Part shown: in pieces, positions 24,890 through 63,854 of the stretch
Position numbering within the stretch: the first letter of the stretch is position 1
How the letters are laid out: each line of letters begins with the position of its first letter
Assembly: GCF_000143415.4 (NCBI RefSeq)
Contig: NW_003314276.1
Coordinates: forward strand, 1,786,107-1,850,106
Origin: Selaginella moellendorffii
Taxonomy: Eukaryota > Plantae > Lycopodiophyta
Direction of reading: 5' to 3'
Length of the DNA stretch: 64,000 nt
The notes under the pieces: generated by a model
Seen by the model: the letters and a program-made list of their open reading frames with translations, nothing else
Databases searched by the model: none
What the model was told of the DNA's origin: nothing
Made by a program: the position numbers and the translations under genes

Positions 24890-26120
24890 ATATCCCTACA
24901 TAGTCGTGCTCCAAGAGATTAAGCTCCTTTCTGGCATTAGTTCGTTGCTTTATCCAAATGCCTGTTAGTGGCATAACTGCTTGTCGGAGGAATCCATACC
25001 GAGAGAAGGGCAGTGGTCATGCTCGTCCCACTCGGGCATTCAATCAACCAGCTGCTTTGCGACATTCCACGAAAATCAATTCCTCAACCTAGAGCCGTAA
25101 AAGACTTGCCATGCCACCTATGGGCATCCACACCTCATATACATTGCACCACCAAATTGGACGCCAACCAATCTCCCGCCGCCGAGGAGGTGTATGATCT
25201 CATTGTGGCTGGATGTGGGTAAATTTGAGACGGTCCTTTATTCCATCCAGCAAAACCTCGCTTGCGAACCACCAAAAATTACATTATTCTAGGGTGCGTT
25301 AGGAGACATGAATCTAGATTGAATATATCTAGCTTTGTTTTTGGTCCACTCGTGCCCATCTAGGAAGCATGGGCTAGATGGCGACCTTTACATCATAGTC
25401 TTCGTCCCCTCCGCCGACACACAATTATTGGTTTCCAAACTCTGATTGTCCCACATCCCACCACCTCAGCCCCACAATATGATCTTATCTATGCGAGGCG
25501 TGTGGCTCAGAGCGTCCAATCCATAGCTCTGAAATTCGATTGGAGAGACCAATGTATGTCTGCCAATGGCACTGTTCTTAGTGGTTGATTGTGTCTCAAT
25601 GCATGCCACAGCTGGCATTGATATTGGTTATAGCCTTACCAACTTCTCCTTCCCTAGGAGAAGATCATCGACGATCACAGCCACGGCTACCAATTCCTCT
25701 CGCAAGTATATCAATAGCCTTGGATTCTCAATCCCCATTCCGATCGAACTTGGCTCATTTTGATAGAATCATGCTCCTGGAGATTAAGCTCCTTTCTGGC
25801 ATTAGCTCGTTGCTTTATCCAAATGCCTGTTACTGGCATAATCTTCTGCTTGTCGGAAGAATCCATACCGAGAGAATGCAGTGATCATGATCCTCCCACT
25901 CGGGCATTCGATTAACCAGCTGCTTGGCCTGGTCAAGAGATGCCAAGGCGAAGAGCATGACATTCCACGAGAATCACTTCCTAGATCTAGAGCCGCGAAA
26001 GACTTGCCATGCCACCTATGGGCATCCACACCTCATCCACACCACATTGCTCCACCGGACGCCAAACAATCTCCGGCCCCTTGCCTGGATGTGGATAAAT
26101 TTGATACAGTTCTTTATTCC
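24890..26120 (-). pseudogene. Two heavily deleted PPR 5' remnants flanking a CCD promoter/transit-peptide fragment (25480-25745, plus strand)
   Basis: Blocks such as gagattaagctcctttctggca and gggcatccacacctc match the PPR 54556-56499. MHATAGIDIGYSLTNFSFP matches the CCD N-terminus. Confidence 0.7.
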
Positions 26121-33067: not shown

Positions 33068-34933
33068 ATGCGAATGGTGTGGCTCAGAGAGGCCAATCCA
33101 ATTCGATTGGAGGGATCAATGTATTTATATATGCCAATGGCACTGTTTTTAGTCATTGATTCTGTCTCAATGCATGCCACAGCTGGGATTGATATTGGTT
33201 ATAGCCTTACCAACTTCTCCTTCCCAGCTCCACCCAAGAGAAGATCATCAGGGATCACAGCCACCGCCACCAAATCCTCTCGCAAGTATATCAATACCCC
33301 TGGATTCTCAATCCCCAATCCAATCGAAGAGGCGCGGGCGGTGGCGGTAGCCCTGTGCGACACTGTGGAGAATCTCATCGCCACGTACATCGATCCCCGC
33401 GAGTTCCCTCCCTCGCAAGACCCCCAGATCCAGCTCGCGGATAATTTCGCGCCTGTTACAGAGTTCCCGCCAACGCCGTGCCGCCGAGTCACTGGCGAGA
33501 TCCCTCGCTGCCTCCGCGGCGGTGCTTACATCCGCAATGGCTCCAATCCACTCCATCCCCCTCCCGCCGGCTACCACTACTTCGATGGCCATGGGATGCT
33601 CCACTCTGTCAAGTTCGGCGATGAAGAGGATCAAGCTCCAGTCTACTGCGCGCGATTCACCCAGAACAATCGATTCGTCCAGGAGCAAGCAGCGGGCAAG
33701 CCTCTCTTCCCCTACACACTGGGCACCATGAGCAGCTATGCTGGGCTCGCACGATTCGGGCTGTTTGTGATGCGCACGGCTCTGGGCCTGATCAATATCT
33801 TGGGCGGGATGGGAACCTCCAACGCTGGGATGGCCTACTTCGATCGCCGAATTCTGGCCATGTCCGAGGATGATATGCCATATGCCGTGAGTATCACACC
33901 AGCAGGGGATTTGATCACCATGGGCCGCTACAGCTTCAACAACCGATTGTTCTTGCCGATGTGCGCTCATCCAAAGATCGATCCAATCTCTGGCGAGCTC
34001 TTCGCGGTTAGCTTCAATCCGGTGATCAATCCCCACCTCCGCTACTTCTGGGCGAGCCCGGACGGGAGGAAGAGCCCCGATTTCGACGTGTGGCTGCCGG
34101 ACCCGTGCTTGTTTCACGACTTCGCGATAACAGAGAACTACGCAATCCTTCCAGAGAATCAGCTCGTGATGAAGTTCCAGGATGTAGTGCTCAAGAACAA
34201 ACTTGTCATTGATGGAGATACCGCCAAGGTTCCCAGATTCGGGGTGATCCCTCGCATCCCGACCGTGGGATATTCCGGCATTCGCTGGATCGACGTCCCG
34301 GATTGGACATCATTCCACTACATCAACGCCTGGGAGGAAGGGACGGACAAGATCGTCGTGCTCAGCTCGTCCATTACGCCCGTGGAACATCTGTTTGACG
34401 ATATCGCCGGATTGTCTAACAGATTGCACGAGATCCACCTGGACCTTCGATCTGGACGGTCGTGGAAGCAACACGTGTGCTCGGCTGGCTTGGATTTTGG
34501 ACAGATCAACCAGAAATTCCTGGGGCGGAAGAATCGGTACGTCTACATGTGCTACTATGGGCCATGGCCTAAAATCTCGGGCCTGGCCAAAATCGATTTG
34601 GACGCTCCACGGCTGCCCAGGGTGGTCATCGATGGAACAAGTGACCCAGATTTAAATGAGCCGTGCATTGTGGCGTCGAGGAGATTCGAACGAGGTCAGT
34701 TTTGTGGTGAGCCTTTCTTTGTGGCGAATGGCGAGGAGGAAGACGATGGATACGTCTTAAGCTATGTCCACAATGAGGAAAGTGGTGTCTCGGAGCTTTT
34801 GGTCATGGATGCCAAATCGCCCACACTTGAGACAGTGGCTTCTATAGAGTTGCCTGCTAGAGTTCCATATGGATTCCATGGGATCTTTATAAATGCCGAT
34901 CAAATAGCCGATCAGAACCATGCCACCTTGTAA
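33068..34933 (+). CDS. Carotenoid cleavage dioxygenase, NCED/CCD4 clade (tandem copy 3)
   Basis: Intact 621-aa ORF, offset 3350 bp from the previous copy. Confidence 0.93.
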   Translation: MRMVWLREANPIRLEGSMYLYMPMALFLVIDSVSMHATAGIDIGYSLTNFSFPAPPKRRSSGITATATKSSRKYINTPGFSIPNPIEEARAVAVALCDTVENLIATYIDPREFPPSQDPQIQLADNFAPVTEFPPTPCRRVTGEIPRCLRGGAYIRNGSNPLHPPPAGYHYFDGHGMLHSVKFGDEEDQAPVYCARFTQNNRFVQEQAAGKPLFPYTLGTMSSYAGLARFGLFVMRTALGLINILGGMGTSNAGMAYFDRRILAMSEDDMPYAVSITPAGDLITMGRYSFNNRLFLPMCAHPKIDPISGELFAVSFNPVINPHLRYFWASPDGRKSPDFDVWLPDPCLFHDFAITENYAILPENQLVMKFQDVVLKNKLVIDGDTAKVPRFGVIPRIPTVGYSGIRWIDVPDWTSFHYINAWEEGTDKIVVLSSSITPVEHLFDDIAGLSNRLHEIHLDLRSGRSWKQHVCSAGLDFGQINQKFLGRKNRYVYMCYYGPWPKISGLAKIDLDAPRLPRVVIDGTSDPDLNEPCIVASRRFERGQFCGEPFFVANGEEEDDGYVLSYVHNEESGVSELLVMDAKSPTLETVASIELPARVPYGFHGIFINADQIADQNHATL

Positions 34934-35289
34934 GAAAATTTGTAAATTGATATAATCTCTTATGTAACTATGTGAGAATTCGTAATAAGAACATATGGAG
35001 CACTATTACTAGGCTCCACATTACTGGCAATTTTCATTGCATCTCCACTTGCGGCAGCTCCAAGCAAGCACTTCCAATCCACACTACTCCTGTATGATTA
35101 GTTGGGTAGGGTATATCCAAAACACTGAGAATCTTCTGTGGGAGATGCCATATTCGCTTTGAGGGTTTGATGGAGTGATCAAACTGGAAAGACACAAAGA
35201 GATGCCAAGCTATGGCATTAGTGCCTTTGTGGGCACACGAAGTGAGCAAAGCAGTTAAGTTCATCAGGTGTATTGGATTGGATGATCTC

Positions 35290-38200
35290 TCGCAATAATA
35301 TTTTAAGGCTGAGGCAGTACAATGCTTTTAGAGAAATTGGGTATGAAAAGGTTGCAATGCTGATAGGATATGTGAATACTCAGAGGACCAATAATTGTGT
35401 GTCCGTAGGATAGGTGAACACTCAGAGGACCAATAATTGTGTGTGCGTAGGACTCAGAGGACCAATAATTATGTGTCTGTATATGCCTGAAATGCTTTTG
35501 TATTTTGTTTTTAGTCTACTCCCTGTCTAAGGACAATTGAAAAAAATATCATCACTTGACATTCAAACTTTTGATGATTTTTTAAGAATGTCACAGTAGA
35601 ATATACTTAATATATACCTATTAAGGATATCCTATCACTTCATTTTTACCCTCAGAGAATGTTGTTTTGATGAAGGAACTCTTTAGAGCAATCTTGGTTA
35701 TTCCAGTAAGCATGGTTGCTTGTAAATGATGATTTTCCAGGCAAAATGTGATGGAGAATCATTTTCAAAATTGACTAAACCTTAAGATATTGGATATGTA
35801 TATATTTTTTTTACTAAAGGGCTTATAGATATATATATTATTAGTTATGTGTTAGGTGTAGTTTCAAGTCCTAAGTCACAACATTACAGGATAAAGGCAA
35901 AATAGCAACTTTATTTTATCATAATATCATTTAACATTTATATTTATATTTAGTGGATAAATGTAAAAACAAATAAAAAATTTGCTATATATACATGATG
36001 CAATATAAATCCTTGCATAGATAAGAAAGTACTCCCTAAATAACCTTAATAAAATAGCATAAATTGATAATTTTTTTGTTACTTTGACTATGACTAGCAA
36101 ATTTTGACTTTCTTGCCCAACCATTCACACCTATTATGGAAATCATGCTATTTCAATCTATTATGCCTAATGGAGAGAGAGAGAGAGAGAGAGAAATAAA
36201 TGAAGTATAACCTAAATGCGTAAGCAAGAACCTTCATCTGCAACACCCATTGTCATATACATGCAATCACATGGCTCTCAAACTGTGTTAAAGTCATTCA
36301 TTAAACAAGGTAGCCAATTTAAAATTTAATTAAGATCAAAGCTATATAAATTTCTTCCTAAATATCAATAGTATAAGTGCTAATTCCTTAAAGTTTTTGT
36401 GTAGATGCCATTCTATCCAAGAAGAAATTTCACAAATCTTAAAGGCAAGACTGAGGTGTATTCTATGCTCTAACATCCCTTTGTTAAATAGGTATTGTCC
36501 AAGTACTTTTGTGTTGCTTGATGCATCAAACCTAATCCAGGCTGTGAGAGTTGGTGGTGGCATTCTCTTTCCTAGGACATTATCTAATGGTTTATTTCTT
36601 TATCAAGGTTTGGGAATTATCTCTGAATTATTCAAAGGTTATTCAGGAACAATCTCTTGGTTTGAGTGTTTGAAGTTAGATCTAGGGTTTAGGGTAGATG
36701 CCATTAAGTGTCAAGCAGCATAGTATTCTCTAGATTGATCAATCTTGGGAAATCTTGTAGCTTTGGCATTTTCAACTATTACTAGGGATGGAATGTAGAT
36801 TTGCAAAGACTTTTGTTTGCCAAGGCACACTATTACTCTAGGGTGTGTTGTCACAACACTAGTTCTAGATTGCATCACAACATATAAGCACTAAGAATTT
36901 AGTTTAGATTAATGCTTGCTAGGGTTATAATGTTTTAGAGGGATTAAAAATTTATGGAAGAAAGTGGTGTCATTACTTTGTCTTGTGCTTGTAGTTCTTC
37001 CTCATCTTTCGAAATTTGAAACATTTTTCTATTTTCTTTACCCCCTATTCTCAAGTAAGAAACATATGCACAAGGATGCCATGAAGCTCATTAACAACTA
37101 AGCTTAAGAAATACTCTAAAATTCATCATGTTCATAGGTGGAAAGGCATTTGACAAGGCTCGAGCAAATATGTCTACACTCAACTTGTCTCAAAAACCAT
37201 CACATATAAGGTTTGAGAAAAGAAGATCATATATCTCAATTAGTTATTGGATCAGTGGCTTTTATTTAAACACTTAAATTTTAGATTAGGCAACACCAAG
37301 AATATACTTAAAAAAACAATTAAACCTTTACTCTAAAGGTATATAATAGGTTTTTTAACCCTTTGAGTGATCCTACCCTAAACAAGTGTGACCACTTTAG
37401 ACTTAGTTCTCTTTTGCAAATTAGGATTTCTATCAGTGACATCAATGTAGCTAGCATATTTACTTTAAGATTCATTCATTCACTCACACAACACCAGAGC
37501 TATAAGTTAGATACTTCACTAAACTTTTTATAATTATCTCTCAAAAAGTTCATAGGATGTTTACTCAAGATGAGAGGTACTCAAGAAGAAGTTACCAAAT
37601 TTATAACACTATTGTTGACTCTATAACATGAGTTTAAATGATATTCACAACATAGTTGCAACACTAGCTAACAAGAGCATTGTCGAGGATTAGTGATTTA
37701 AAGTAGAAATTATAAGCCAAAATTCCTAGAATAAAAAATAGAACAATTTTTAAAATAAATCAATTTGGCAGTACATATTAGGAATAACTAGAATTGTTAA
37801 TGAAAATGAGAATGAAAACAAAAAATCACTAAAACTTCACTATGTACCACAATTCTAAAATTTTAGGAAGAATTATTGGAATTTTATTAGATATATAAAA
37901 TTCCTAGCAGTGTAACTTTATTTTAGAATTATGCACATATATAGTTTTTGCCCAAAATCCCACATATAATTGCTTATATAATTTAAATACCCATTGTGGG
38001 ATTTTTAGTGCATAACCCCCCACTTTACTCCTGGCATGCATGCACCTCAGTTAACTGCCACATCAAATGGTTCAACCACTCACTAACAACTAGGTGAGGA
38101 TTGCATTGAGGTTCTAACCCAAGATGCATTAGGAGGGGTAGTAGGTAGATTAGTGAAGCCCAAGGTTAGATTTTACATGAATAATAGCCTAGATTTCACT
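35290..38200. repeat. About 3-kb AT-rich block, probable decayed transposon; copies at about 46620-49640 (direct) and 57325-61410 (inverted)
   Basis: Three colinear copies, each with a (GA)n tract, CpG-poor, short stop-ridden ORFs. Family not recognised. Confidence 0.75.
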
Positions 38201-38970
38201 TGTGCTCATCAAAAATAGAAATCTTTGGTAAGTTCTTCCGTGGTTAACTTCAGTGATCAATCACCACTTCCGTTACTTCTGGGCAAGCCCAGACGGGAGA
38301 AAAAGAGATGAATTTCCAGGATGTAGTGCTCGAGAACAAACTGGTCATTGATGGAAATACTGCACAAGGGTCCCAGATTGATCCTCCCTCGCATCCCAGC
38401 TGTGGGATCTTCTGGATCGACATCCCGGATTGGATGTAATTCCACTACATCCACGCCTGGGAGGAAGGGATGGACAAGATCGTTGTGTCCATTACGCCGG
38501 TGGAACATCTATTTGATGATTTCGCCGGATTGGCCAACAGATTGCACAAGATCCACCTGGACCTTTGATCTGGACGGTCGTGGAAGCAACATGTGTGCTC
38601 GGCGGGACTGGATTTTGGAAAGATCAACCAGAAATTCCTGGGGCAGAAGAACTGGTACGTCTACATGTGCTACTATGGGCCATGGCCCAAAATCTGTGGC
38701 CTGGCCAAGGTCGATCTGGTGTGGCGTCGAGGAGATTCGAACGTGGTAAGTTTTGTGGCGAATGGCGAGGAGGAAGATGATGGATACATCATCTTAAGCT
38801 ACGTCCATGATGAGAAAAATGGTGTCTCGGAGCTTTTGGTCATGGATGCCAAATCGCCCACACTTGAGATAGTGGCTTCTATAGAGCTGCCTGCTGGAGT
38901 TCCATATGGATTCCATGGGATCTTTATAAATGCCAATCAAATAGCCAACCAAAACCATGCCACCGTCTAA
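38200..38970 (+). pseudogene. 5'-truncated, frameshifted CCD
   Basis: Starts near the AHPK motif. Deletions and a premature TGA. Ends ...VPYGFHGIFINANQIANQNHATV*. Confidence 0.9.
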
Positions 38971-39022
38971 GAAAATTTGATATAATTGTAAAAATTAATA
39001 TAGTCTCTTGAAAATATCTAAG

Positions 39023-40977
39023 CTATGTAACTATGTGAGAATTGGCAATAAGAACATATGGAGCACTGTTACTAGGCTCCACACTAATGGCATTTTTCAT
39101 TGCATCTCCACTCGCTACAGCTCCAAGCAAGCACTTCCAATCCATGGAATCTGGGTAGTATGGCATCTCCCACAGAAGATTCTCAGCGTCTTGGATATAC
39201 CCTGACTGGACAAGCACACCAATCATACATGAGTAGTGTTGCTTTGAGGGTTTGATGGAGTGATCAAACTGGAAAGACACAAAGAGATCCCCAGCTATGG
39301 CAGCAGCACCTTTGTGAGCACACGACGTGAGCAAAGCTGTTAAGCTAGCTTCATCAGGTGTATTAGTAGTGACCATGGTTTGCAAGGCATCCAAGGCTCT
39401 GGAAATGGCCCCAATCCGAGAGTATGCCGCCAGCATTGCATCCCAAGATATGAAGTCCTTGTCCGGCATTGTTAAGAATATCCGATTTGCCATATCCAGA
39501 TGCCCGTTTTGGGTATATGCAGAAAGCATTCACTCCATGGAGATTGGTTTCTTTCTTGGATTGAATCGAACACACTTTTAGCTTCCAGTAACTGCAAATT
39601 TGATGAAAAACCAGACAAGAAAGCATTGAAAGCAATAGCACTCTTTTCATTGGAGTTGTCAAAAATTCTCTTAGCCAAAAGCATATGTCCAGTTCGGGCA
39701 TATGCCGACACGAGCACAATCAGTGGTATTTCGCCGTGACCTGGCATTTTTTCAAAAATACACAGGGCGTCTTCTAGCCTGTGGTTGTTTACATATCCTG
39801 TCAGCATGGCAGTCCACGTAACCTCGTTTCGCTCCTTCATTCCATCAAAGAGTTTCTTTGCTTTTTCCAGATGCCCGTTGCAAGCATATGCTGTAATGAG
39901 AGCGGTTGCCGGGACTAAATGCTCGCCTTGATCAGGCAGACCTAAATATATGGCTTCGGCGTCGTGAGTCCGCCCTCGTCGAGAATACAAGCGCAGCATT
40001 GCAGTGCAAGCAAACGCGTTGTGGCGCTGCATGGTGTAAAATATTTGCTCAGCCTCCGCGATGCTACTGTCCTCGTGATCTGCGTAAGCGGACAGGATTA
40101 CTGCGCATGAAACCACATCGATACACTCCATCGACTCAAACAGATTCTTTGCCTCGTGAAAGCAGCCACTTTCCGCCAAGACGACAAGCAAAACCGTGGA
40201 GGCAACCAAATCCTTGTGAGGCAGCGCGAGGAAGAAATACTTGGCATCTTCCAAAAGGCCGTGCTGGCCAAAGCACTGAATCATGGACGTAAAAGACAGA
40301 GCATCAAATTCTGGCATGTTGGAGAAGATGTCCTTCGCCTCCTGCAAATGCCCAGCTTGGGCAAGTGCTGATAGTTGAGAGTTCCAAGCAACAAGATCTC
40401 TCTCAGGCATGGAGCTGAAGAGTGTCGTTATTTAAAACAAGTTGGTGGATTTGGATAGAATTGTGGTCCAAGAGATTAAGCTCCTTTCTGGCATAAGCTC
40501 AAAGAGCTGCATTGCTTTATCCAAATACCCGTTTGTGGCATATGCTAAGATCATTGCGTTCCATGCTACAAGGCCTCTCTCTCTCATGGAATCGAAAACT
40601 TCTTTTGCCTGTAGGAGTAAGCCATGCCGAGAGAAGGCAGTGATCATGATCGACCATGAAGCAACATCCCATTCGGGCATTCGATCAAACAACTGCTTTC
40701 CTTGGTCAAGATAGCTGTTTGATGCGAAGGCAGAGAGCATGGCATTCCACGAGAATCGATCCCGTGATGTAGAGCCACGAAAGATTTGCCATGCTGCCTT
40801 TGGGCATCCACACCTCCCATACATTTGCACCACCAAATTGCATGCCAAGCAGTCTCCTGCCGCGAGGAGGTGCTCAATCTCATTGTGGAGCTTAGAAGCT
40901 GTGGATAGATTGGTACACTTCTTTATTGCATCCAACAAAACCTCTCGACAATCTGGTTCTCTGTAAGAAAAAACCAT
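39023..40977 (-). pseudogene. PPR pseudogene (copy of 54556-56499)
   Basis: CAA>TAA at 40432 and a 1-bp deletion near 39530 split the ORF in three. Confidence 0.9.
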
Positions 40978-40981
40978 ATAA

Positions 40982-41371
40982 TCATGCACAATCTTGGATG
41001 GTTCCTTGGTTGTTGTAGACACAATCATCAATTTGGAGATTAGTTTCATGATCCGCACCACTGTTGTCTTTGCACGTCGCATAGTAGACCAACTTTGGGA
41101 TGTTTTCATTGTTATACATGCAACCTGTGGGCGTGCATGTCTCTAAGAAATTTGCCCCGCCACACTTTAAATTCCCATTATCATTGTGGATGTGATTGTC
41201 CAAGACCAAATAAATCTCAGATTTTCCAGGGAGACACCATTCTAAATGAATAGTGGTTAAGTTGAATTCAACTATATTACAAGTAAGTGAGAAATCCCCA
41301 CACCCAAATGTTTTAGGAATGATCAAAGCAGCAAGCGAGGCAACAATGGAAACTATCAATCGCACACCCAT
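40982..41371 (-). CDS. Secreted cyanovirin-N homology (CVNH) lectin, 129 aa
   Basis: Signal peptide, then GDFSLTC...LDNHIHNDNGNLKCGGANFLETC...ATCKDNSG...TNLQIDDCVYNNQGTI. Aligns by eye with cyanovirin-N GKFSQTC...LNSVIENVDGSLKWQPSNFIETC...AECK...INLDDHIANIDGTL. Confidence 0.85.
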   Translation of the reverse strand: MGVRLIVSIVASLAALIIPKTFGCGDFSLTCNIVEFNLTTIHLEWCLPGKSEIYLVLDNHIHNDNGNLKCGGANFLETCTPTGCMYNNENIPKLVYYATCKDNSGADHETNLQIDDCVYNNQGTIQDCA

Positions 41372-41509
41372 TCTAAAAATTAGTTTTTTGAAGTGCTGAG
41401 ATTTATTGTTAAGGGAAAATCCAATCAACCTTTATGGAGACAAAAGTTTTTGCCATGTAGTCCACATAGCGGTGATGAAGTAGATAAATATTCTTATTGA
41501 TGAACAAAA

Positions 41510-42122
41510 ATATTCAAAAACATTGGAGTTGTCAAAGATTCTCTTCTCAAAAAGCATACGTCCATTTCGGGCACAATCTGGTATCACGCTGTGATCGGCA
41601 TTGTTTCGATGGTATGGCAGTCTCGTCTCGCATCAAAGAGATTCTTTCGGACTAAATGCTCGTCTTGATCAGGCAGACCTAAATATATGGCTGAGTCCGT
41701 TCTTGAGAATACAAGCGCAGCATTGCAGTGCAAGCAAACGCTGTATGCTGTAAAAATTCTGCTCAGCCTACTGTCGTCATGATATGCATAAGCACAGCAC
41801 AAGACAACACAGCAAAGCAGTGGACGCAACCAAATCCTTATGAGGGTGGCCAAAGCACTGGGCGTGAACGACAGAGGAGCAAACTCTGGCATGTTGGAAA
41901 AGATGTTCTTCGCCTCCTGCAAATGCCCAGCTTGGGCAGTTGCTGCTAGATGAGATTTCCAAGAAACAAGATCTCTCGGCATAAACAGAGTCCTTAATTG
42001 GCATATGTTGGTGGTCTTTGATAGAATTGTGGTCTAAGATATTAGCTCCTTTCCGGCATAAGCTCAAAGATGCATTTCTTTATCCAAATGCCCGTTTGTG
42101 GCAGACTATCATTGCATTCCGG

Positions 42123-42176
<54 letters not shown>

Positions 42177-42424
42177 ACACACACACGGAATAAAAAACAG
42201 GAGTAAACCTGATGTTTGATGTGGCATGGCATTCCACTCCTCGATCTAGATACTTGCCATGCCGCCTCAGGGCATCCACACCTCCCATACATTTGCACCA
42301 GAAAATTGGATGCCAAACAATCTCCTGCCGCAAGGAGGCACTTGATCTCATTGTGAAGCTTACAAGCTGCAGATAGATTGCTACACTTTTTTATTCCATC
42401 CAATAAAACCTCTTGACCATACAT
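41510..42424 (-). pseudogene. Deleted PPR paralog containing a (CT)n microsatellite
   Basis: MYGQEVLLDGIKKCSNLSAACKLHNEI..., AQAGHLQEAKNIFSNMPEF. (CT)n at about 42124-42170. Confidence 0.8.
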
Positions 42425-42444
42425 TGCTCTCTATGAGAAAAAAA

Positions 42445-42590
42445 GCATATCTGTTGATGCAATCTTGGCTAGTGCCTTGAGAGTTGTAGAAACAATCATC
42501 AATTCGGAGATTAGTGTCTTGACCTACACCACCATCGTCTTTGCAGCTTTGGGATTTCCATTTGTAAAATTCAAACATGCATGTCTCAAT
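42445..42590 (-). pseudogene. CVNH 3' fragment
   Basis: ETCMFEF...SCKDDGGVGQDTNLRIDDCFYNSQGTSQDC. Confidence 0.75.
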
Positions 42591-42877
42591 TTGAGAAGGG
42601 CAAGCAGCAAGATCCAAGCTCAGGATCACAAGAACCAAGGGGGAGGAGTGATGGGCAGTGGTTGTATCCCACAGCCTCAAGACCCAAGGCTCCATTTCTT
42701 CGATACTCTCATCCCTGGCACTAGATACTAGCGATAGAAACGAAAAGGCTCCCATTCATCGATGATTCTTCCAGTTGTCAATAAATTCCATGTCATACTA
42801 AAAGAACTCCAGTTGATTGATCAAATGGTTCTTTAGTTCTTCCCAAAAGTTTCTTTGCCATCTCTACGCGATCATCT

Positions 42878-43647
42878 CTATGATCGCCTAAACGCGTTCT
42901 TGTCCGTGAACTTCTCGCGGTAGTGCGATCGCCGATGCAAAGTGTCCGCGACCGAGGCACTGCCTCCATTCTCGGTGCCATAGACACTCCTGTTCGTCTC
43001 GTCCAGGAAGTTCTTCCCCGACTTGATCGAGTCCTTCTCCTCCTGGACAGCGTCGCTCGCCGAGGCGCGTTTGATCCGCTGCCATCGCTGCTCCTCGTGG
43101 AGCTCCGCGTCCTGCTGCATCTCTCTCAGCCGCGCCATCTTCTCCTCCTCGCTCAGCTGGGCTTTCTTCCTCGGCAGCGGTGGCTTGCCGGAGCCACGGT
43201 TTTCCTCCTGTCCCTGTGCCTGTCTTCGTGCCTGCGATGCCGTTCATCCACATGTCTCTCCCGCTTTCTACTTCTCGTATCATCGTCCTCGCGAACTTGG
43301 TTGCTTCTGTACCTGTCTTGCTCGTCTCTCTCGGGAATTCTTTTGCTGCGATCTTCTCGATCATCCCGTGAAGAAGCACCTATTTTGTTTCTATGCCTGT
43401 CTTCCCCGTCGCTGTCCTCGGCAGAGCTTTTCCTCCTGCTATACCTGTCATCCTCATCGGAACCTCCTTTGTTTCCATCGTCATCCTCCTCGGCAGCTCT
43501 TCTGCTTCGATCAGCTCTCTTTGCTTCTGGCTCGCCAGCTTCACCGTTCTCTTTCATTTTCTTCTTCAGTGCCTTCCTCTTCTGCTTCTCCTCGGCTTTT
43601 ACTTGTGCTTTCAATCGCTTCTTTTCCTCTTTAGCTTCCATCTTGAA
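42878..43647 (-). pseudogene. 3' fragment of pre-mRNA splicing factor CWC25-like gene
   Basis: Lys/Glu- and Arg/Asp-rich region, then LSEEEKMARLREMQQDAELHEEQRWQRIKRA...KNFLDETNRSVYGTENGGS...NAFRRS*, typical of the plant CWC25 C-terminus. Frame break near 43190, no 5' domain. Confidence 0.75.
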
Positions 43648-44818
43648 GTTCTCGGTCACTGCCCTCGTCTACATCCAGGTGACTTACGGATGGACGTGGG
43701 GATGGGGCGGCGCTACCGCTGTCGTCGCCCTCGCCACCCTGCTCTTCTTCTCCGGGAGATCAAACTATCGCACCCAAAAGCCCGCTGGAAGTCCCTTCAC
43801 CCGCGTCGCTCAGGTCCTGGTGGCGGCCACCAGGAAGTGGAATGTGAGCGTTCCAGACGACGATGAGAAGCTGTACGAGCTGAGCGACAAGGAGGCGCAG
43901 TTCCCACACATTCGGAACCTCCCCAGGAGTAAAGAATTCACGTAAGTCCAGAAGAACAATCTTAGCTTACTACGATTGATCGCGAGCAGATTCCTGAACA
44001 AGGCGGCGGTGGTGAGCGAGAAGGATCTGCAGAGCAAGGAAGTGAAGCCGTGGAGCCTGTGCCCAGTGACGCAAGTCGAGGAAGTGAAGCTCCTAGTGCG
44101 AGTGATGCCCATCTGGTTCACGAACCTCATCTTTAGCAGCGTCTTCGCCCAGGTGGGCACCTTATTCCTCAACCAGGGCGACACCATCGAGCGGCATCTG
44201 GGGCGATTCCAGATCCCAGCCGCCTCCTTCACGCTCTTCATCCTCACCATTTGCATCATCATGCCGCTCTACGACCGCTGCTTCGTGCCATTCGCGTGCC
44301 GGATCACGGGGAACGAGCGAGGGATCACGATGCTCCAGCGCATCGGGATCGGCCAGGTCATCTCCACGGTCTCCATCGCCATCGCCGCGGTGGTGGAGAT
44401 GAAGCGCTTGCGAGTGGCTAGGCAACATGGTCTGTTGGATCGCCCCCAGTCGACGGTCCCGATGAGCGCATTCTGGCTCTTGCTGCAGTGAGTTCGCGAG
44501 GTTTTCATCTCCGTCGGCCAGAACGAGTTCTTCTACGATCAAGCCCCGGATTCCATGCGAAGCATTGGAGTGGCGCTCTATCTCAGCACCATCTCCATCG
44601 GGAGCTTCATCAGCAGCTTGCTCGTGGAGATGGTGGTCAAGTTTACAAGTACAAAAGGTGGGGGGGTTGACGGCAACTGGATCAATGACAATCTCAACAG
44701 GGCTCACATTGATTACTTCTACTGGCTGCTCACTATTCTCAGCATCATCAACCTTGGGATATATGTCTTGTGTGCGAGGTGGTATACTTACAAGCATGTG
44801 GGAGATATTGCAATTTGA
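43648..44818 (+). pseudogene. 5'-truncated duplicate of the NPF gene
   Basis: Near-identical to 21924-23134 starting at gttctcggtcactgcc. A deletion near 44488 creates a stop. Confidence 0.92.
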
Positions 44819-45059
44819 TCATCAATCGATCCTAGTAACATGTTCTGCAGCAGTTTGTGAGACGAGAGCATACCAGGAGAGACCAAGAGAAGGGCTAAGC
44901 GGCTGGGGACGAGCTATCGCAATAGCGATGATGTGATATCACTACCACCACCATAATAAGATACTTATTGCTATATCTTTTAAATATGACCCTATCCAGT
45001 TATAAGTTTAGCTCAAAGTTTGAACTGTCAGAGTAAGCCCTAAAATATTGATCTTATCT

Positions 45060-46205
45060 AATCCATAGCTCTAAAATTCTATTGGAGGGATCAATATATT
45101 TAGGTATGCCAATTGCACAGTTAATTTGGTCGCAATGCATGCCACACCGTCTGGGCCTGATCAATATCTTCGGCGGGATGGGATCGAAGTAGGCCATCCC
45201 AGCGTATGATATGCCATATGCCCAGCAGGGGATTTGATCACCATGGGCCGCTACAGCTTCAACAAGCGATTGTTCTTGCCGATGTGCGCTCATCCAAAGA
45301 TCGATCCAATCTCTGGCGAGCTCTTCGCGGATCAATCCCCACCTCCGCTACTTCTGGGCGAGCCCGGACAGGAGGAAGAGCCCCGATTTCGACGTGTGGC
45401 TGCTTGTTTCACGACTTCGCGATAACAGAGAACTACGTAATCCTTCCAGAGAATCAGCTCGTGATGAAGTTCTCAAGAACAAACTGGTAATTGATGGAGA
45501 TACTGCCAAGGTTCCCAGATTCGGGGTCATCCCTCGCATCCCGACCGTGGGATCTCCTGGATCGACGTCCCGGATTGGACATCATTCCACTACATCAACG
45601 CGTGGGAGGAAGGGACGGACAAGATCGTCGTACTCAGCTCGTCCATTACGCCGGTGGAACATCTGTTTGACGATATCGCCGGATTGTCCAACAGATTGCA
45701 CGAGATCCACCTGGACCTTCGATCTGGATGGTCGTGGAAGCAACACGTGTGCTCGGCTGGACTGGATTTTGGACAGATCAACCAGAAATTCCTGAGGCGG
45801 AAGAATCGGTACGTTTACATGTGCTACTATGGGCCATGGCCCAAAATCTCGGGTCTGGCCAAGGTCGATTTGGACGCTCCACGGCTGCCCAAGGTGGTCA
45901 TCGATGGAACAAGTGACCCAGATCTAAACGAGCCATGCCTTGTGGCATCGAGGAGATTTGAACGAGGTCAGTTTTGTGGCAAGCCTTTCTTTGTGGTAAA
46001 TGGCAAGGAGGAAGACGATGGATGCGTCTTAAGCTACATCCACGATGAGGAAAGTGGTGTCTCAGAGCTTTTGGTCATGGATGCCAAATCGCCCACACTT
46101 GAGACAGTGGCTTCTATAGAGTTGCCTGCTAGAGTTCCATATGGATTCCATGGGATCTTTATAAATGCTGATCAAATAGCCAACCAGAACCATGCCACCT
46201 TGTAA
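45060..46205 (+). pseudogene. CCD pseudogene with multiple deletions and a micro-inversion
   Basis: About 600 bp missing after MH, many small deletions, GEP>GKP change. The 3' third is in frame. Confidence 0.9.
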
Positions 46206-49639: not shown

Positions 49640-50337
49640 GTGTGATCATCAAAAATAGAAATCTTTGGTAAGTTCTTCATGGTTAACTTCAGTGATCAAT
49701 CCCCACCTTTGTTACTTCTGGGCAGGGAGGAAAGAGATGAATTTCCAAGATGTAGTGCTCAAGAACAAACTGGTCATTGATGGAGATACTGCCCAAGGGT
49801 CTCAGATTGATGCATCCCGGCCACGGGATTTTCCGGATCGACGTCCCGGATTGGATGTAATTCCACTACATCCATGCCTGGGAGGAAGGGATGGACAAGA
49901 TTGTCATGTCCATTACGCCAGTGGAACATCTGTTTGACGATTTCGCTGGATTGTTCAACAGATTGCACAAGATCCACCTGGCCCTTCGATCTGGACGGTC
50001 GTGGAAGCAACATGTGTGCTCGGCAGGACTGGATTTTGCACCAGAAATTCCTGGGGCAGAAGAACCGTTGGCTAAGGTTGATCTGGTGTGGCATCATGGA
50101 GATTCGAACATGGTAAGTTTTGTGGCAAATGGTGAGGAGGAAGACGATGGATATGTCGTCTTAAGCTACGTCCATCATGAGAAAAATGGTGTCTCGGAGC
50201 TTTTGTTCATTCATGCCAAATCGCCCACACTTGAGACAGTGGCTTCTATAGAGTTGCCTGCTGGAGTTCCATATGGATTCCATGGGATCTTTAGAAATGC
50301 CGATCAAATAGCCAACCAAAACCATGCCACCTTCTAA
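49640..50337 (+). pseudogene. 5'-truncated CCD (duplicate of 38200-38970)
   Basis: Same breakpoint next to the AT-rich block, with additional deletions. Confidence 0.9.
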
Positions 50338-50389: not shown

Positions 50390-52300
50390 CTATGTAACTA
50401 TGTGAGAATTGGCAATAAGAACATATGGAGCACTGTTACTAAGCTCCACACTAATGGCATTTTTCATTGCATCTCCACTCGCTACAGCTCCAAGCAAGCG
50501 CTTCCAATCCATGGAATCAGGGTAGTATGGCATCTCCCACAGAAGATTCTCAGCGTCTTTGACCGGACAAGCACACCAATCATACATGAGTAGTGTTGCT
50601 TTGAGGGTTTGATGGAGTGATCAAACTGGAAAGACACAAAGAGATCCCCAGCTATGGCAGCAGCACCTTTGTGAGCGCACGACGTGAGCAAAGCTGTTAA
50701 GCTAGCTTCATCAGGTGTATTAGTAGTGACCATGGTTTGCAAGGCATCCAAGGCTTTGGAAATGGCCCCAATCCGAGAGTATGCCACCAGCATTGCATCC
50801 CAAGATATGAAGTCCTTGTCCAGCATTGTTAAGAATATCCAATTTGCCATATCCAGATGCCCGTTTTGGGTATATGCAGAAAGCATTCACTCCATGGAGA
50901 TTGGTTTCTTTCTTGGATTGAATCGAACACACTTTTAGCTTCCAGTAACTGCAAATTTGATGAAAAACCAGACAAGAAAGCATTGAAAGCAATAGCACTC
51001 TTTTCATTGGAGTTGTCAAAAATTCTCTTAGCCAAAAGCATATGTCCAGTTCGGGCATATGCCGACATGAGCACAATCAGCGGTATCTCGCTGTGACCCG
51101 GCATTTTTTTGAAAATCCACAGGGCGTCCTCTAGCCTGTGGTTGTTTACATATCCTGTCAGCATGGCAGTCCACGTAACCTCGTTTCACTCCTTCATTCC
51201 ATCAAAGAGTTTCTTTGCTTTTTCCAGATGCCCGTTGCAAGCATATACTGTAATGAGAGCGGTTGCCGTGACTAAATGCTCGCCTTGATCAGGCAGACCT
51301 AAATATATGGCTTCGGCGTCGTGAGTCCGTCCTCGCCGAGAAGGCAAGCGCAGGATTGCAGTGCAAGCAAACGCGTTGTGGCGCTGCATGGTGTAAAAAA
51401 TTTGCTGAGCCTCGGCGATGCTGCTGTCGTCGTGATCTGCGTAAGCGGACAGGATTACCACGCATGAAACCACATCTATACACTCAATCGACTCAAACAG
51501 ATTCTTTGCCTCGTGAAAGCAGCCACTTTCCACCAAGACGACAAGCGAAACCATGCAGGCAACCAAATCCTTGTGAGGCAGTGCGAGGAAGAAATACTTG
51601 GCATCTTCCAAAAGGCCGTGCTGGCCAAAGCACTGAATCATGGACGTAAAAGACAGAGCATCAAATTCTGGCATGTTGGAGAAGATGTGCTTCGCCTCCT
51701 GCAAATACCCAGCTTGGGCAAGTGCTAATATCTGAGAGTTCCAAGCAACAAGATCTCTCTCAGGCATGGAGCTGAAGAGTGTCGTTATTTAAAACAAGTT
51801 GGTGGATTTGGATAGAATTGTAGTCCAAGAAATTAAGCTCCTTTCTGGCATAAGCTCAAAGAGCTGCATTGCTTTATCCAAATGCCCGTTTGTGGCATAT
51901 GCTAAGATCATTGCATTCCATGCTACAAGGCCTCTCTCTCTCATGGAATGGAAAACTTCTTTTGCCTGTAGGAGTAAGCCATGCCGAGAGAAGGCAGTGA
52001 TCATGATCGACCATGAAGCAACATCCCATTCGGGCATTCGATCAAACAACTGCTTTGCTTGGTCAAGATGGCTGTTTGATGCGAAGGCAGAGAGCATGGC
52101 ATTCCACGAGAATCGATTCCGTGATGTAGAGCCGCGGAAGATTTGCCATGCTGCCTCTGGGCATCCACACCTCCCATACATTTGCACCACCATGCCGCGA
52201 GGAGGTGCTCAATCTCATTGTGGAGCTTAGAAGCTGTGGATAGATTGGTACACTTCTTTATTGCATCCAACAAAAGCTCTCAAGAATCTAGTGCTAACAT
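50390..52300 (-). pseudogene. PPR pseudogene (copy of 54556-56499)
   Basis: Shares the TAA (51789) and the 1-bp deletion with 39023-40977, plus extra stops and deletions. Confidence 0.9.
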
Positions 52301-52327
52301 GGTTCTCTGTAAGAAAAAACCATATAA

Positions 52328-52717
52328 TCATGCACAATCTTGGATGGTTCCTTGGTTGTTGTAGAAACAATCATCAATTCGGAGATGAGTGTCATGATCC
52401 GCACCACTGTTGTCTTTGCACGTCGCATAGTAGACCAACTTTGGGATGGTTTCATTGTTATACTTGTAACCTGTGGGCGTGCATGTCTCTAAGAAATCTG
52501 TCCCGCCACACTTTAAATTGCCATTATCATTCTGGATGTGATTGTCCAAGACCAAATAAATCTCAGATTTTTCAGGGAGACACCATTCTAAATGAATATA
52601 GATTAGGGTGAATTCAAATATAGGACAAGTAAGTGAGAAATCCCCACACCCAAATGTTTTAGGAATGATTAAAGTAGCAAGCGAGGCAACAATAGAAACT
52701 ATCAATTGCACACCCAT
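52328..52717 (-). CDS. Secreted CVNH lectin, 129 aa
   Basis: Intact paralog of 40982-41371 (GDFSLTC, LDNHIQNDNGNLKC, DFLETC, LRIDDCFYNNQGTI). Confidence 0.85.
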   Translation of the reverse strand: MGVQLIVSIVASLATLIIPKTFGCGDFSLTCPIFEFTLIYIHLEWCLPEKSEIYLVLDNHIQNDNGNLKCGGTDFLETCTPTGYKYNNETIPKLVYYATCKDNSGADHDTHLRIDDCFYNNQGTIQDCA

Positions 52718-54335: not shown

Positions 54336-54555
54336 CACCTAAAATTACATTATTCTAAAGCAGAGATGATATTTCGTGTGGTGGTGCGTTAGGAGACATG
54401 AATCCAGATTGAATATATCTAGCTTTGTTTTTGGTCCACTCGTACCCGTCTAGGAATCATGGGACCATACCTTTACATGATGTTTCTATAGTCTTCATCC
54501 CCTCCAAGAAGCAAGGAACCATCCAAGATTGTGCATGATTATATGGTAGAGAACC

Positions 54556-56499
54556 ATGGTCACACTAGATTGTCGAGAGGTTTTGTTGGATGCAATAAAG
54601 AAGTGTACCAATCTATCCACAGCCTCTAAGCTCCACAATGAGATTGAGCACCTCCTCGCGGCAGGAGACTGCTTGGCATGCAATTTGGTGGTGCAAATGT
54701 ATGGGAGGTGTGGATGCCCAGAAGCAGCATGGCAAATCTTCCGCGGATCTACATCACGGAATCGATTCTCGTGGAATGCCATGCTCTCTGCCTTCGCATC
54801 AAACAGCCATCTTGACCAAGCAAAGCAGTTGTTTGATCGAATGCCCGAATGGGATGTTGCTTCATGGTCGATCATGATCACTGCCTTCTCTCGGCATGGC
54901 TTACTCCTACAGGCAAAAGAAGTTTTCCATTCCATGAGAGAGAGAGGCCTTGTAGCATGGAATGCAATGATCTTAGCATATGCCACAAACGGGCATTTGG
55001 ATAAAGCAATGCAGCTCTTTGAGCTTATGCCAGAAAGGAGCTTAATCTCTTGGACCACAATTCTATCCAAATCCACCAACTTGTTTCAAATAACGACACT
55101 CTTCAGCTCCATGCCTGAGAGAGACCTTGTTGCTTGGAACTCTCAACTATCAGCACTTGCCCAAGCTGGGCATTTGCAGGAGGCGAAGCACATCTTCTCC
55201 AACATGCCAGAATTTGATGCTCTGTCTTTTACGTCCATGATTCAGTGCTTTGGCCAGCACGGCCTTTTGGAAGATGCCAAGTGTTTCTTCCTCGCGCTGC
55301 CTCACAAGGATTTGGTTGCCTCCACAGTTTTGCTTGTCGTCTTGGTGGAAAGTGGCTGCTTTCACGAGGCAAAGAATCTGTTTGAGTCGATGGAGTATAT
55401 CGATGTGGTTTCATGCGCGGTAATCCTGTCCGCTTACGCAGATCACGACGACAGCAGCATCGCGGAGGCTCAGCAAATATTTTACACCATGCAGCGCCAC
55501 AACGCGTTTGCTTGCACTGCAATGCTGCGCTTGTATTCTCGGCGAGGACGGACTCACGACGCTGAAGCCATATATTTAGGTCTAACTGATCAAGGCGAGC
55601 ATTTAGTCCCGGCAACCGCTCTCATTACAGCATATGCTTGCAACGGGCATCTGGAAAAAGCAAAGAAACTCTTTGATGGAATGAAGGAGCGAAACGAGGT
55701 TACGTGGACTGCCATGCTGACAGGATATGTAAACAACCACAGGCTAGAGGACGCCCTGTATATTTTTGAAAAAATGCCGGGTCACGGCGAAATACCACTG
55801 ATTGTGCTCGTGTCGGCATATGCCCGAAGTGGACATATGCTTCTTGCCAAGAGAATTTTTGACAACTCCAATGAAAAGAGCGCTATTACTTTCAATGCTC
55901 TCTTGTCTGGTTTTGCATCAAATTCTCAGTTACTGGAAGCCAAAAGTGTGTTCGATTCAATCCAAGAAAGAAACCAATCTTCATGGAGTGCAATGCTTTC
56001 TGCATATACCCAAAACGGGCATCTGGATATGGCAAATCGGATATTCTTAACAATGCCGGACAAGGATCTCATATCTTGGGACACAATGCTGGCGGCATAC
56101 TCTCAGATTGGGGCCATTTCCAGAGCCTTGGATGCCTTGCAAACCATGGTCACTACTAATACACCTGATGAAGCTAGCTTAACAGCTTTGCTCACGTCGT
56201 GTGCTCACAAAGGCACTGCTGCCATAGCTCGGGATCTCTTTGTGTCTTTCCAGTTTGATCACTCCATCAAACCCTCAAAGCAACACTACTCATGTATGTT
56301 TGGTGTGCTTGTCCGGTCAGGGTATATCCAAGACGCTGAGAATCTTCTGTGGGAGATGCCATACTACCCAGATTCCATGGATTGGAAGTGCTTGCTTGGA
56401 GCTGTAGTGAGTGGAGATGCAATGAAAAATGCCATTAGTGTGGAGCCTAGTGACAGTGCTCCATATGTTCTTATTGCCAATTCTCACATAGTTACATAG
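54556..56499 (+). CDS. PLS-class PPR protein (31-aa repeat array, E-like end, no DYW), intact
   Basis: 647-aa ORF ending HYSCMFGVLVRSG...MPYYPDSMDWKCLLGA...EPSDSAPYVLIANSH. Confidence 0.92.
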   Translation: MVTLDCREVLLDAIKKCTNLSTASKLHNEIEHLLAAGDCLACNLVVQMYGRCGCPEAAWQIFRGSTSRNRFSWNAMLSAFASNSHLDQAKQLFDRMPEWDVASWSIMITAFSRHGLLLQAKEVFHSMRERGLVAWNAMILAYATNGHLDKAMQLFELMPERSLISWTTILSKSTNLFQITTLFSSMPERDLVAWNSQLSALAQAGHLQEAKHIFSNMPEFDALSFTSMIQCFGQHGLLEDAKCFFLALPHKDLVASTVLLVVLVESGCFHEAKNLFESMEYIDVVSCAVILSAYADHDDSSIAEAQQIFYTMQRHNAFACTAMLRLYSRRGRTHDAEAIYLGLTDQGEHLVPATALITAYACNGHLEKAKKLFDGMKERNEVTWTAMLTGYVNNHRLEDALYIFEKMPGHGEIPLIVLVSAYARSGHMLLAKRIFDNSNEKSAITFNALLSGFASNSQLLEAKSVFDSIQERNQSSWSAMLSAYTQNGHLDMANRIFLTMPDKDLISWDTMLAAYSQIGAISRALDALQTMVTTNTPDEASLTALLTSCAHKGTAAIARDLFVSFQFDHSIKPSKQHYSCMFGVLVRSGYIQDAENLLWEMPYYPDSMDWKCLLGAVVSGDAMKNAISVEPSDSAPYVLIANSHIVT

Positions 56500-56551
56500 C
56501 TTAGATATTTTCAAGAGACTATATCAATTTTTATAACTATATCAAAATTTC

Positions 56552-57325
56552 TTAGAAGGTGGCATGGTTTTGGTTGGCTATTTGATCGGCATTTATAAAG
56601 ATCCCATGGAATCCATATGGAACTCCAGCAGGCAGGCAGCTCTATAGAAGCCACTATCTCAAGTGTGGGCGATTTGGCATCCATGACCAAAAGCTCCGAG
56701 ACACCATTTTTCTCATCATGGATGTAGCTTAAGATGACATATCCATCGTCTTCCTCCTCGCCATTCGCCACAAAACTTACCATGTTCGAATCTCCTTGAC
56801 GCCACACCAGATTGACCTTGGCCAGGCCGCAGATTTTGGGCCATGGCCCATAGTAGCACATGTAGACGTACCGGTTCTTCTGCCCCAGGAATTTCTGGTT
56901 GATCTTTCCAAAATCCAGCCCCGCCGAGCACACATGTTGCTTCCACGACCGTCCAGATCGAAGGTCCAGGTGGATCTTGTGCAATCTGTTGGCCAATCTG
57001 GCGAAATCGTCAAACAGATGTTCCACTGGCGTAATGGACACGACGATCTTGTCCATCCCTTCCTCCCAGGCGTGGATGTAGTGGAATTACATCCAATCCA
57101 GGACGTCGATCCGGAAGATCCCACGGCCAGGATGCCGGGGAGGATCAATCTGGGACCCTTGGGCAGTATCTCCATCAATGACCAATTTGTTCTTGAGCAC
57201 TACATCCTGGAAATTCAACTCTTTTCCTCCCGTCTGGGCTTGCCTAGAAGTAACAGAAGTGGTGATTGATCACTGAAGTTAACCATGAAGAACTTACCAA
57301 AGATTTCTATTTTTGATGAGCACAA
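56552..57325 (-). pseudogene. 5'-truncated CCD (inverted duplicate of 38200-38970)
   Basis: Reverse complement of the truncated CCD, with an extra 4-bp duplication near 56632. Confidence 0.9.
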
Positions 57326-58864: not shown

Positions 58865-58902
<38 letters not shown>

Positions 58903-60951: not shown

Positions 60952-60952
<1 letters not shown>

Positions 60953-61024: not shown

Positions 61025-61026
<2 letters not shown>

Positions 61027-63394: not shown

Positions 63395-63738
63395 TTGGTT
63401 GTTGTAGAAACAATCATCAATTCGGCATGATCAACATTACTTTTATCTTTGCACCTTGCATAGCAGACCACCTTTGGGATGGTTTCATTGTTATACATGA
63501 AACCTATGGGCGTGCATGTCTCTAAGAATTTTTCCCCGCCACACTTTAAATTCCCATTATCATTGTGGATGTGAGTGTTCAAGACCAAATATCGAGGGAG
63601 ACACCATTCTACACGAATAATGGTTGAGCTGAATTCAGCTATAGCACAAGTAAGTGAGAAATTCCCACACCCAAATGTTTTAGGAATGATCAAAGCAGCA
63701 AGCGAGGCAACAATAGAAACTATCAATCGCACACCCAT
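63395..63738 (-). pseudogene. Third CVNH copy, 3' frameshifted and truncated
   Basis: MGVRLIVSIVAS...GNFSLTC...LNTHIHNDNGNLKCGGEKFLETC...ARCKDKS. Frame lost near 63425, then joins the CCD promoter. Confidence 0.8.
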
Positions 63739-63854
63739 TCTAAAAATTAGTTTTTTGAAGTACAAACGCTGAGATTTATTGGCAAGTGAAAATCCAATCA
63801 ACCTAAATTTTTTTGCCATGTAGTCCACGTAGCTAAATATTCTTATTGATGAAC

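Follow-up and report, generated by a model that had tools for sequence, protein, structure and literature searches.

Unannotated CVNH lectin genes beside PPR pseudogenes in a duplicated region of the Selaginella moellendorffii genome

Introduction

Lectins of the CVNH (cyanovirin-N homology) family occur in fungi and seed-free plants and, as in CrCVNH of Ceratopteris richardii (2JZJ) and Selaginella SELMODRAFT_424600 / LOC112347223, consist of one domain of about 100 residues behind a signal peptide. PLS-class PPR proteins of Selaginella ('At4g02750-like') carry a long array of motifs of 31-35 residues behind a short N-terminus and are encoded by intronless genes. Genes of both kinds were found next to each other in 64,000 nucleotides of nuclear DNA of the lycophyte Selaginella moellendorffii (NCBI RefSeq assembly GCF_000143415.4, contig NW_003314276.1, positions 1,786,107 to 1,850,106). 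This whole stretch is called the window, and positions refer to it unless a scaffold is named. An earlier inspection of the letters alone, called the sequence-only reading below, had placed a CVNH open reading frame (ORF) in an intron of the 5' untranslated region (5'-UTR) of a PPR gene, so that one transcript would give either a secreted lectin or a PPR protein. Such a splicing-switched lectin/PPR transcription unit would, if true, add a new type to the known gene arrangements of plants.

The CVNH proteins of the window have the layout of the known lectins. Their likeness to CrCVNH was seen in profile comparison (E 1e-19) and in Foldseek (template modelling score, TM, 0.68-0.76), and they align with it at four invariant cysteines and at the repeated N-D-N-G-x-L motif. 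They differ from known members in being just about 28-34% identical to any deposited protein, locally duplicated, AT-rich and fast-diverging, and they are intronless, whereas a single short intron is present in each of the two annotated Selaginella CVNH genes. The PPR family of the window is likewise built as a long, intronless array with a short N-terminus, and its best relatives are PLS/DYW proteins of Selaginella and Ginkgo. Unlike PLS/DYW editing factors, it is at most 36% identical to any annotated PPR and has no E or DYW Pfam domain.

The arrangement of the two genes recalls two described systems. As with 5'-UTR introns and nested genes, an acceptor-like site lies 8 nt before the PPR start, and the gene model of one paralogous copy has an intron that ends there and holds CVNH remnants; unlike in nested genes, the host PPR is dead at all three such sites, and the live PPRs are without the polypyrimidine tract. 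Same-strand ORFs less than 100 nt apart are known from green-algal bicistronic nuclear loci (PMC11291117). The unit in the window differs from these in its strong first start, 10 intervening ATGs and a long first ORF.

Results

Copies of the CVNH and PPR genes

The locus is probably an ordinary young segmental duplication that carries unannotated, fast-diverging CVNH lectin genes, and a coupled lectin/PPR unit was not established. Copies of the CVNH+PPR unit were located by self-comparison at 41371-39023 (A), 42548-41521 (B), 52717-50390 (C), 54512-56499 on the plus strand (D) and 63804-63395 (E, the 5' part of CVNH). Four further copies (F, G and two B-like ones) lie on a paralogous stretch of scaffold GL377577.1, designated L004, which was reached through one close protein match. 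Within the window, CVNH and PPR do not function together: beside an intact CVNH (A, C) stands a PPR pseudogene, and an intact PPR (D, F) goes with a broken CVNH and with the loss of 10 nt from the T-tract between the two genes. Copies A, C and D are 94-97% identical over their whole length (A vs C 94% over 2.4 kb); B, at about 81% identity, is riddled with deletions. Upstream of each CVNH lies a PPR fragment truncated at one common point (A-equivalent ~39648), which points to a tandem duplication with a unit running from the CVNH 5' flank into the PPR.

Same-strand adjacency with a tiny spacer had been claimed and was borne out, the distance between CVNH and PPR being 22-25 nt. The PPR that was supposed to be expressed across this spacer is dead at all three sites (A, B, C), and the idea of a CVNH in the 5'-UTR intron of a working PPR gene, with one transcript for either protein, is not supported. 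Intact PPR ORFs of the family were found only in D within the window and in F on scaffold GL377577.1. With D as the reference frame, A and C have in common a CAA>TAA change at codon 178 and a 1-nt deletion at D nucleotide 1436; the PPR was thus dead already in their common ancestor.

PPR-D is an annotated gene in GCA_000143415.2 (scaffold GL377580.1), and its ATG stands in the context ACCATGG. The PPR identity given by the sequence-only reading was confirmed by Pfam, with 283 bits for PPR and 222 bits for PPR_2 in a tandem array. No match to PF20431 (E) or PF14432 (DYW) was obtained for PPR-D in the Pfam search; many of its relatives carry them. The ORF ends about 17 residues into a motif which we take to be E1, 53 nt from a fragment of an RPE65 (carotenoid-cleavage-dioxygenase) gene. 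Since it ends at the start of an E1-like motif, even the 'intact' PPR copies are C-terminally truncated. Comparisons among the PPR copies gave ratios of nonsynonymous to synonymous substitution rates (dN/dS) of 0.4-0.5. For the products of PPR-D and PPR-F, look-ups led to nothing but the genome assembly, with no transcript contig.

As a separate observation, an F-like copy is expressed, and the 'intact' PPRs of the family (54556-56499; L004 15953-17887) may be truncated relics. Since PPR-D starts like other Selaginella PPRs, the idea that the PPR misses a coding exon at its N-terminus was rejected.

The T-tract/AG motif between CVNH and PPR

The pattern TTTTTTCTYAYAGAGARCM had exactly three matches in the window, all on the minus strand (Table 1), and 0.03 were expected from shuffled sequences; the three sites named by the sequence-only reading thus stood. 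Every one of these 19-nt T-tract/AG sites lies directly 3' of a CVNH end and ahead of a PPR start. The CVNH stop codon TGA was found at 40984-40982 in A and at 52330-52328 in C, and the T-tract begins 8 nt further on. The starts of the PPR had also been read correctly, with ATG at 42424 in B and at 52300 in C; the ATG of copy A was lost with an 11-nt deletion, the deleted piece holding the PPR ATG in C, D, F and G, and A instead has an in-frame ATG at 40977.

The motif had further been called a conserved, splice-acceptor-like element. Its acceptor-like appearance held, and the homologous AG is used in the deposited model P0153 of copy G (see below); conservation beyond that of the flanks was not found. 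In an alignment of eight copies, identity between the A family and the B family was 75-79% in the motif and 66-80% in the flanks. A and C have no mismatch over 50 nt of the junction, and several other 60-nt windows were identical as well. Because the motif is no better conserved than its surroundings, the apparent conservation reflects inheritance. The three sites are copies of one duplicated unit, so that the excess over chance covers one ancestral occurrence. Look-alike strings of the form Y9-A-Y-AG were counted at about five independent places in 128 kb of both strands.

A common 10-nt deletion in D and F took most of the T-tract. Copies A, B, C, G and the two B-like copies retain the tract, which is thus ancestral and was lost in the lineage with the living PPR. 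Loss ahead of the live PPRs is the opposite of what is expected of a PPR splice acceptor, and the T-tract fits either a part of the CVNH 3' end or neutral sequence. The motif is part of the spacer and shared by descent, not a conserved regulatory signal. Two other roles of the T-tract were considered and rejected: a poly(A) remnant of a retrocopy, as there are just 6 T, and a TATA box of the PPR, as a TATAT sits 13 nt from the ATG in D.

Inversion between copies D and E

One CVNH-PPR unit was split into E and D by an inversion of about 8.9 kb. The homology of E to A ends with '...AACAACCAA' and that of D begins with 'CAAGGAACC...'; joined, they give one CVNH 3' end with a 3-nt overlap. Colinearity was found between 33100-41018 and the reverse complement of 54502-63239 and, in direct orientation, between 41006-41431 and 63395-63804. 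The cut lies in the 3' end of CVNH, about 12 codons ahead of the stop codon, and the left breakpoint is bridged by uninverted paralogues (window 25280-25560 and L004 20524-21821). The inversion parts D from the body and 5' flank of its CVNH, and no intron spanning CVNH can therefore serve PPR-D.

The inversion junctions show a few filler bases and 3 nt of microhomology. For the reshaping of a gene pair by tandem duplication, inversion and pseudogenisation, the locus offers a small and clean case, in which uninverted paralogues (window 33100-41431 and the two named above) span both breakpoints.

The CVNH lectin genes

CVNH-A and CVNH-C belong to the Pfam family CVNH (PF08881), as had been assigned, with 38.2 bits (2.7e-9) and 34.7 bits against a cut-off of 24.5. 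A profile of the two and their relatives matched cyanovirin-N chains of the Protein Data Bank (PDB) over the full domain with E-values of 1e-20 to 1e-40. The AlphaFold2 (AF2) model of the mature protein was built from an alignment of 11 sequences and reached a predicted local distance difference test (pLDDT) value of 80.6; the single-sequence model (pLDDT 39.7) was unusable and was replaced by it. All of the top 25 PDB neighbours in Foldseek were CVNH proteins, with TM by target of 0.61-0.76 for monomeric entries, and the predicted structure has the cyanovirin-N fold with its two beta-rich, pseudo-symmetric halves. The start of CVNH-A has A at -3 and G at +4.

Both genes are without annotation in the public assembly. 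No record was returned by an exact-product look-up of CVNH-A, and a word-index homologue search with it was blank; an exhaustive HMMER search gave nine weak matches at E<1e-3 among 1.84 billion representatives. In cluster look-ups, PPR-D, the pieces of A and both CVNH-A and CVNH-C, queried with the stop codon and without it, were all absent from the protein collection. Literature searches on CVNH in Selaginella and on Selaginella PPR pseudogenes yielded nothing specific. Judged by sequence, the CVNH genes are new, divergent and previously unannotated members of a known lectin family.

The two genes differ at 24 nucleotides, 20 of them nonsynonymous and 4 synonymous, with dN/dS of about 1.3 overall and 2.2 in the mature part. 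None of the CVNH copies B, E, F and G is intact: E has a frame-shifting 10-nt deletion and is cut off at the inversion breakpoint, and F has one deletion and a 45-nt insertion with stop codons. GC content is 36-40% in CVNH and 45-54% in PPR. The window thus holds a divergent, locally amplified subfamily of predicted secreted CVNH lectins in the Selaginella reference genome, with mostly amino-acid-changing differences. This pattern is expected of a defence lectin, and equally of neutral decay.

It was further observed that 18 of 129 residues differ between the CVNH ORFs at 40982-41371 and 52328-52717, the adjacent PPR DNA being 97% identical, and that nucleotide divergence in CVNH is about twice that in PPR, with mostly nonsynonymous changes.

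RNA evidence

Two raw runs (X21 and X22, 12% of each read) and two contig sets (X1 and X2, whose RNA nature was guessed) were searched; joints were listed from at least three reads, and contig results hold among the pieces listed. The check proposed earlier, for junctions ending at the AG, turned up no joint at 40960 or 42430 in the two raw runs and two contig sets, at a depth of just 0-4. With 12% of the runs read and at least three reads needed for a joint, this absence is a weak negative. One X1 contig (42271-42454) crosses the motif of copy B unspliced.

Another X1 contig (40978-41316) corresponds to CVNH-A with two differences at a depth of 6.2. Raw reads of CVNH-A numbered 0 in X21 and about 2 in X22, and these two run past the stop codon toward the PPR start. 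Together they indicate weak expression of CVNH-A. X1 had no coverage over 41317-42270, the 5' flank of CVNH-A, and its depth is very uneven and RNA-like.

PPR-like contigs of X1 had depths of 22-55. Of 32 sites at which they differ from A, 26 agree with F and 21 with D, and they carry CAA at the stop codon of A, with G at 40434 and an extra G after 39530. These F/D-type bases show the expressed PPR to be an intact copy without the tract. Strands were calibrated on the small plus-strand gene that starts at 42598, where minus-strand first mates dominate 45:7; by this rule the low coverage of PPR-A (depth 0-4) is sense RNA.

Discussion

Proposed explanation

The unit consists, in minus-strand order, of a CVNH gene, a spacer of 22-25 nt and a PPR gene backed by an RPE65 fragment, and the block that holds it has been duplicated and rearranged repeatedly. 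CVNH-A and CVNH-C would be small, independent, intronless genes with their own proximal promoter, for which a conserved CCAAT/TATA-like stretch 40-120 nt upstream of CVNH is a candidate. Their products are predicted to be secreted, mannose-type lectins. An AATAAA occurs in A (Table 1) and likewise in B and C, 52-66 nt past the CVNH end, and the CVNH mRNA probably ends at such an AATAAA (55-66 nt past the stop codon), inside the dead PPR and within its first ~100 nt; spacer and PPR start would then serve as its 3' UTR. The intact PPRs would be transcribed independently, starting at the CVNH 3' remnant or shortly before it. It may well be that the AG is competent for splicing, which would mean opportunistic splicing of a transcript initiated upstream and no designed lectin/PPR switch.

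Several points weigh against this reading. The deposited model of P0153 would splice an upstream exon to this very AG in paralogue G. The dN/dS of CVNH-A vs CVNH-C is indistinguishable from neutral, and the lectin genes, too, may be decaying. Both the poly(A) site and the promoter of CVNH are putative assignments from short motifs. The RNA test is weak, given the fraction of the two raw runs, the depth of 0-4 and the guessed status of the contigs. Lastly, the pattern of a tract kept with live CVNH and lost with live PPR represents just two independent lineages.

Alternatives

It is possible, if unlikely, that the motif is the 3' splice site of a PPR 5'-UTR intron holding CVNH and that the window copies are decayed descendants of this arrangement; splicing over CVNH would then give the PPR mRNA, and an early end or intron retention the lectin mRNA. 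The site is close to the acceptor consensus (T-tract, CAG) and lies 8 nt ahead of the PPR ATG, and a conserved donor-like AG|GT precedes the CVNH ATG by 60-70 nt in A, C and E. Further in its favour, PPR-like RNA in X1 is four times deeper than CVNH RNA, as expected if CVNH is spliced out; the deeper RNA, however, stems from F/D-type copies without the T-tract. Likewise, no joints and no RNA in the 5' flank of CVNH-A (41317-42270) were seen, at thin depth. The PPRs after all three sites are dead, and D cannot have an intron spanning CVNH after the inversion, yet keeps an intact ORF. A nested working unit, as put forward by the sequence-only reading, is not supported by the intact copies themselves, D and F being without 10 nt of the T-tract and D being detached by the inversion.

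One argument for a nested gene comes from paralogue G. P0153, named a PPR protein of S. moellendorffii by NCBI, is modelled with two exons (L004 10001-10198 and 11421-11822), and the exons joined by a script reproduce the deposited protein exactly. The intron of 1222 nt is of the GT-AG type, with the donor CGC|GTACGT and the acceptor CAACAG|AGAACCATG at 11420/11421. This acceptor is the homologue of the AG in the window; a B-like copy lies in the intron, together with the 3' remnant of a CVNH. If RNA supports P0153, at least one copy uses the motif as a functioning 3' splice site. Exon 1 lacks any known domain and has no counterpart in the window, and it lies head-to-head with a strongly expressed small gene at a distance of about 75 nt, which makes it look like a by-product; PPR-G itself is broken after ~133 codons. 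Splicing of P0153 is read as opportunistic, acting on a divergent transcript, and shows at most that the AG is splice-competent. With the upstream exon of this model missing from the window and the motif conserved no more than its flanks, a nested or otherwise coupled lectin-PPR unit is regarded as unlikely to quite unlikely for the ancestral unit and as less likely still for the window copies.

Quite unlikely, too, is an ancestral nested pair, with the AG as a real 3' splice site and the lectin gene in the PPR 5'-UTR intron, whose products competed for one primary transcript and which was resolved in opposite ways after duplication, A and C having kept the lectin and lost the PPR, and D and F having kept the PPR, lost the lectin and deleted the tract. 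If true, it would be a natural case of degenerative partitioning of nested genes.

Another view, to which we give an equally small chance, regards everything as decaying duplicate DNA: the CVNH ORFs of A and C would be open because they are short and young, and their weak RNA would be read-through noise. It agrees with the near-neutral dN/dS of 1.3 for A vs C, with a roughly estimated probability of ~0.2 that neutral evolution would leave both 387-nt ORFs open, and with the missing annotation of either CVNH, the scarce reads (0 in X21, about 2 in X22) and the broken copies B, E, F and G. Against it stand two complete ORFs, each with its signal peptide intact and with 9-10 cysteines, beside PPRs that gathered 2-7 lesions in the same period, as well as the A-type CVNH contig in X1; an elevated dN/dS is also expected from diversifying selection on a defence lectin.

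An unspliced, dicistronic mRNA with both ORFs, in which the PPR start is reached by leaky scanning or reinitiation, is very improbable. An ORF1 of 129 codons is too long for efficient reinitiation. The CVNH start is strong, 10 ATGs stand between the two starts in both A and C, and the PPR ORFs after the intact CVNHs are dead; the dicistronic variant raised by the sequence-only reading thus failed. One or two X22 reads cross the junction of A contiguously, and depth accounting in X1 implies bridging contigs. The inter-ORF distance of 22-25 nt also resembles the green-algal loci, where a weak first start, with few ATGs upstream, is required for leaky scanning (PMC11291117).

Scarcely credible is a spliced CVNH-PPR fusion protein, for which the same-strand proximity of the genes and the PPR frame of A, which continues upstream without a stop for ~50 codons across the CVNH 3' end, could be cited: the ORFs are in different frames with a stop codon between them, no joint was seen, a Pfam CVNH domain occurs in 0 of the 120 best PPR relatives, the lengths of CVNH relatives range from 97 to 281 aa, one unrelated repetitive match excepted, and a secreted lectin on an organellar RNA-binding array makes little biological sense.

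Table 1. Positions of the CVNH, PPR and spacer features in the window and on the paralogous stretch L004
Feature	Position	Strand	Description
CVNH-A	40982..41371	-	intact intronless ORF of 129 codons; single CVNH domain; signal-peptide-like N-terminus
CVNH-B remnant	42459..42548	-	last ~30 codons, no stop codon (tblastn, alignment)
CVNH-C	52328..52717	-	intact ORF of 129 codons; 86% amino-acid identity to CVNH-A
CVNH-E	63395..63804	-	5' flank and first ~118 codons of the CVNH formerly ahead of PPR-D
AATAAA	40922..40927	-	55 nt past the CVNH-A stop, within the first PPR codons; candidate poly(A) signal
Motif copy A	40955..40973	-	T-tract, CTTACAG, then AGAACC; 11 nt missing just downstream
Motif copy B	42425..42443	-	~75-79% identity to copy A, equal to its flanks
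Motif copy C	52301..52319	-	identical to motif copy A
PPR-A pseudogene	39023..40977	-	in-frame TAA at 40434-40432 (CAA in D); 1-nt deletion near 39530
PPR-B pseudogene	41521..42424	-	heavily deleted; (CT)n microsatellite; truncated at the unit boundary (A 39648)
PPR-C pseudogene	50390..52300	-	3 in-frame stops; deletions of 22 and 10 nt; 1-nt deletion of A
Copy D 5' part	54512..54555	+	last ~36 nt of CVNH coding sequence and spacer without 10 nt of the T-tract
PPR-D	54556..56499	+	sole intact PPR ORF of the family in the window, 647 aa
Inverted segment	54506..63394		~8.9 kb; split one CVNH-PPR unit into E and D
PPR-F	L004 15953-17887		intact, 644 aa, annotated; scaffold GL377577.1

Neighbouring genes and other observations

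RPE65 gene sequence and 3' fragments of it lie at 38593-38970, 45654-46205, 49891-50337 and 56552-60499 (minus strand), each piece being convergent to a PPR copy and 53 nt away from it. With such a piece beside each PPR copy, the block that was duplicated extends beyond CVNH+PPR. Part of a POT/NPF transporter gene occurs in two copies (21924-23221 and 43648-44913) with 93% identity. A CWC25 splicing-factor gene (minus strand, ~42878-43660) has a duplicate at L004 8132-9541 with 92% identity. Two more long PPR ORFs, about 32% identical to PPR-D, were found on the plus strand at 1664-3391 and 5298-7046, and many PPR fragments with 70-80% identity at 24.9-35.3 kb; the window is PPR-rich and highly rearranged.

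About 970 nt of L004 are absent from the window at 42597/42598, and this loss truncates a small intronless gene. The complete gene (L004 9650-9925, minus strand) encodes a His/Ser-rich protein of ~95 aa and is very highly expressed, with contig depths of 120-650. Abundant reads at 42598-42700 that break at 42598 were considered as a splice of a plus-strand gene across the locus, and this was rejected. Their loose letters do not occur in the window and are contiguous at L004 9782-9811, which assigns the reads to the complete paralogue.

Adjacency of CVNH and PPR as a general rule was rejected, as both other annotated Selaginella CVNH loci are without a PPR neighbour; these genes are ~28-29% identical to the CVNHs of the window. 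An alpha/beta-hydrolase coding sequence begins 75 nt after LOC112347223 (CVNH, one short intron; L003 6001-12430, GL377585.1), and very short spacers thus occur elsewhere in the compact Selaginella genome. LOC112347223 also lies near two jacalin-lectin genes and may belong to a small lectin neighbourhood.

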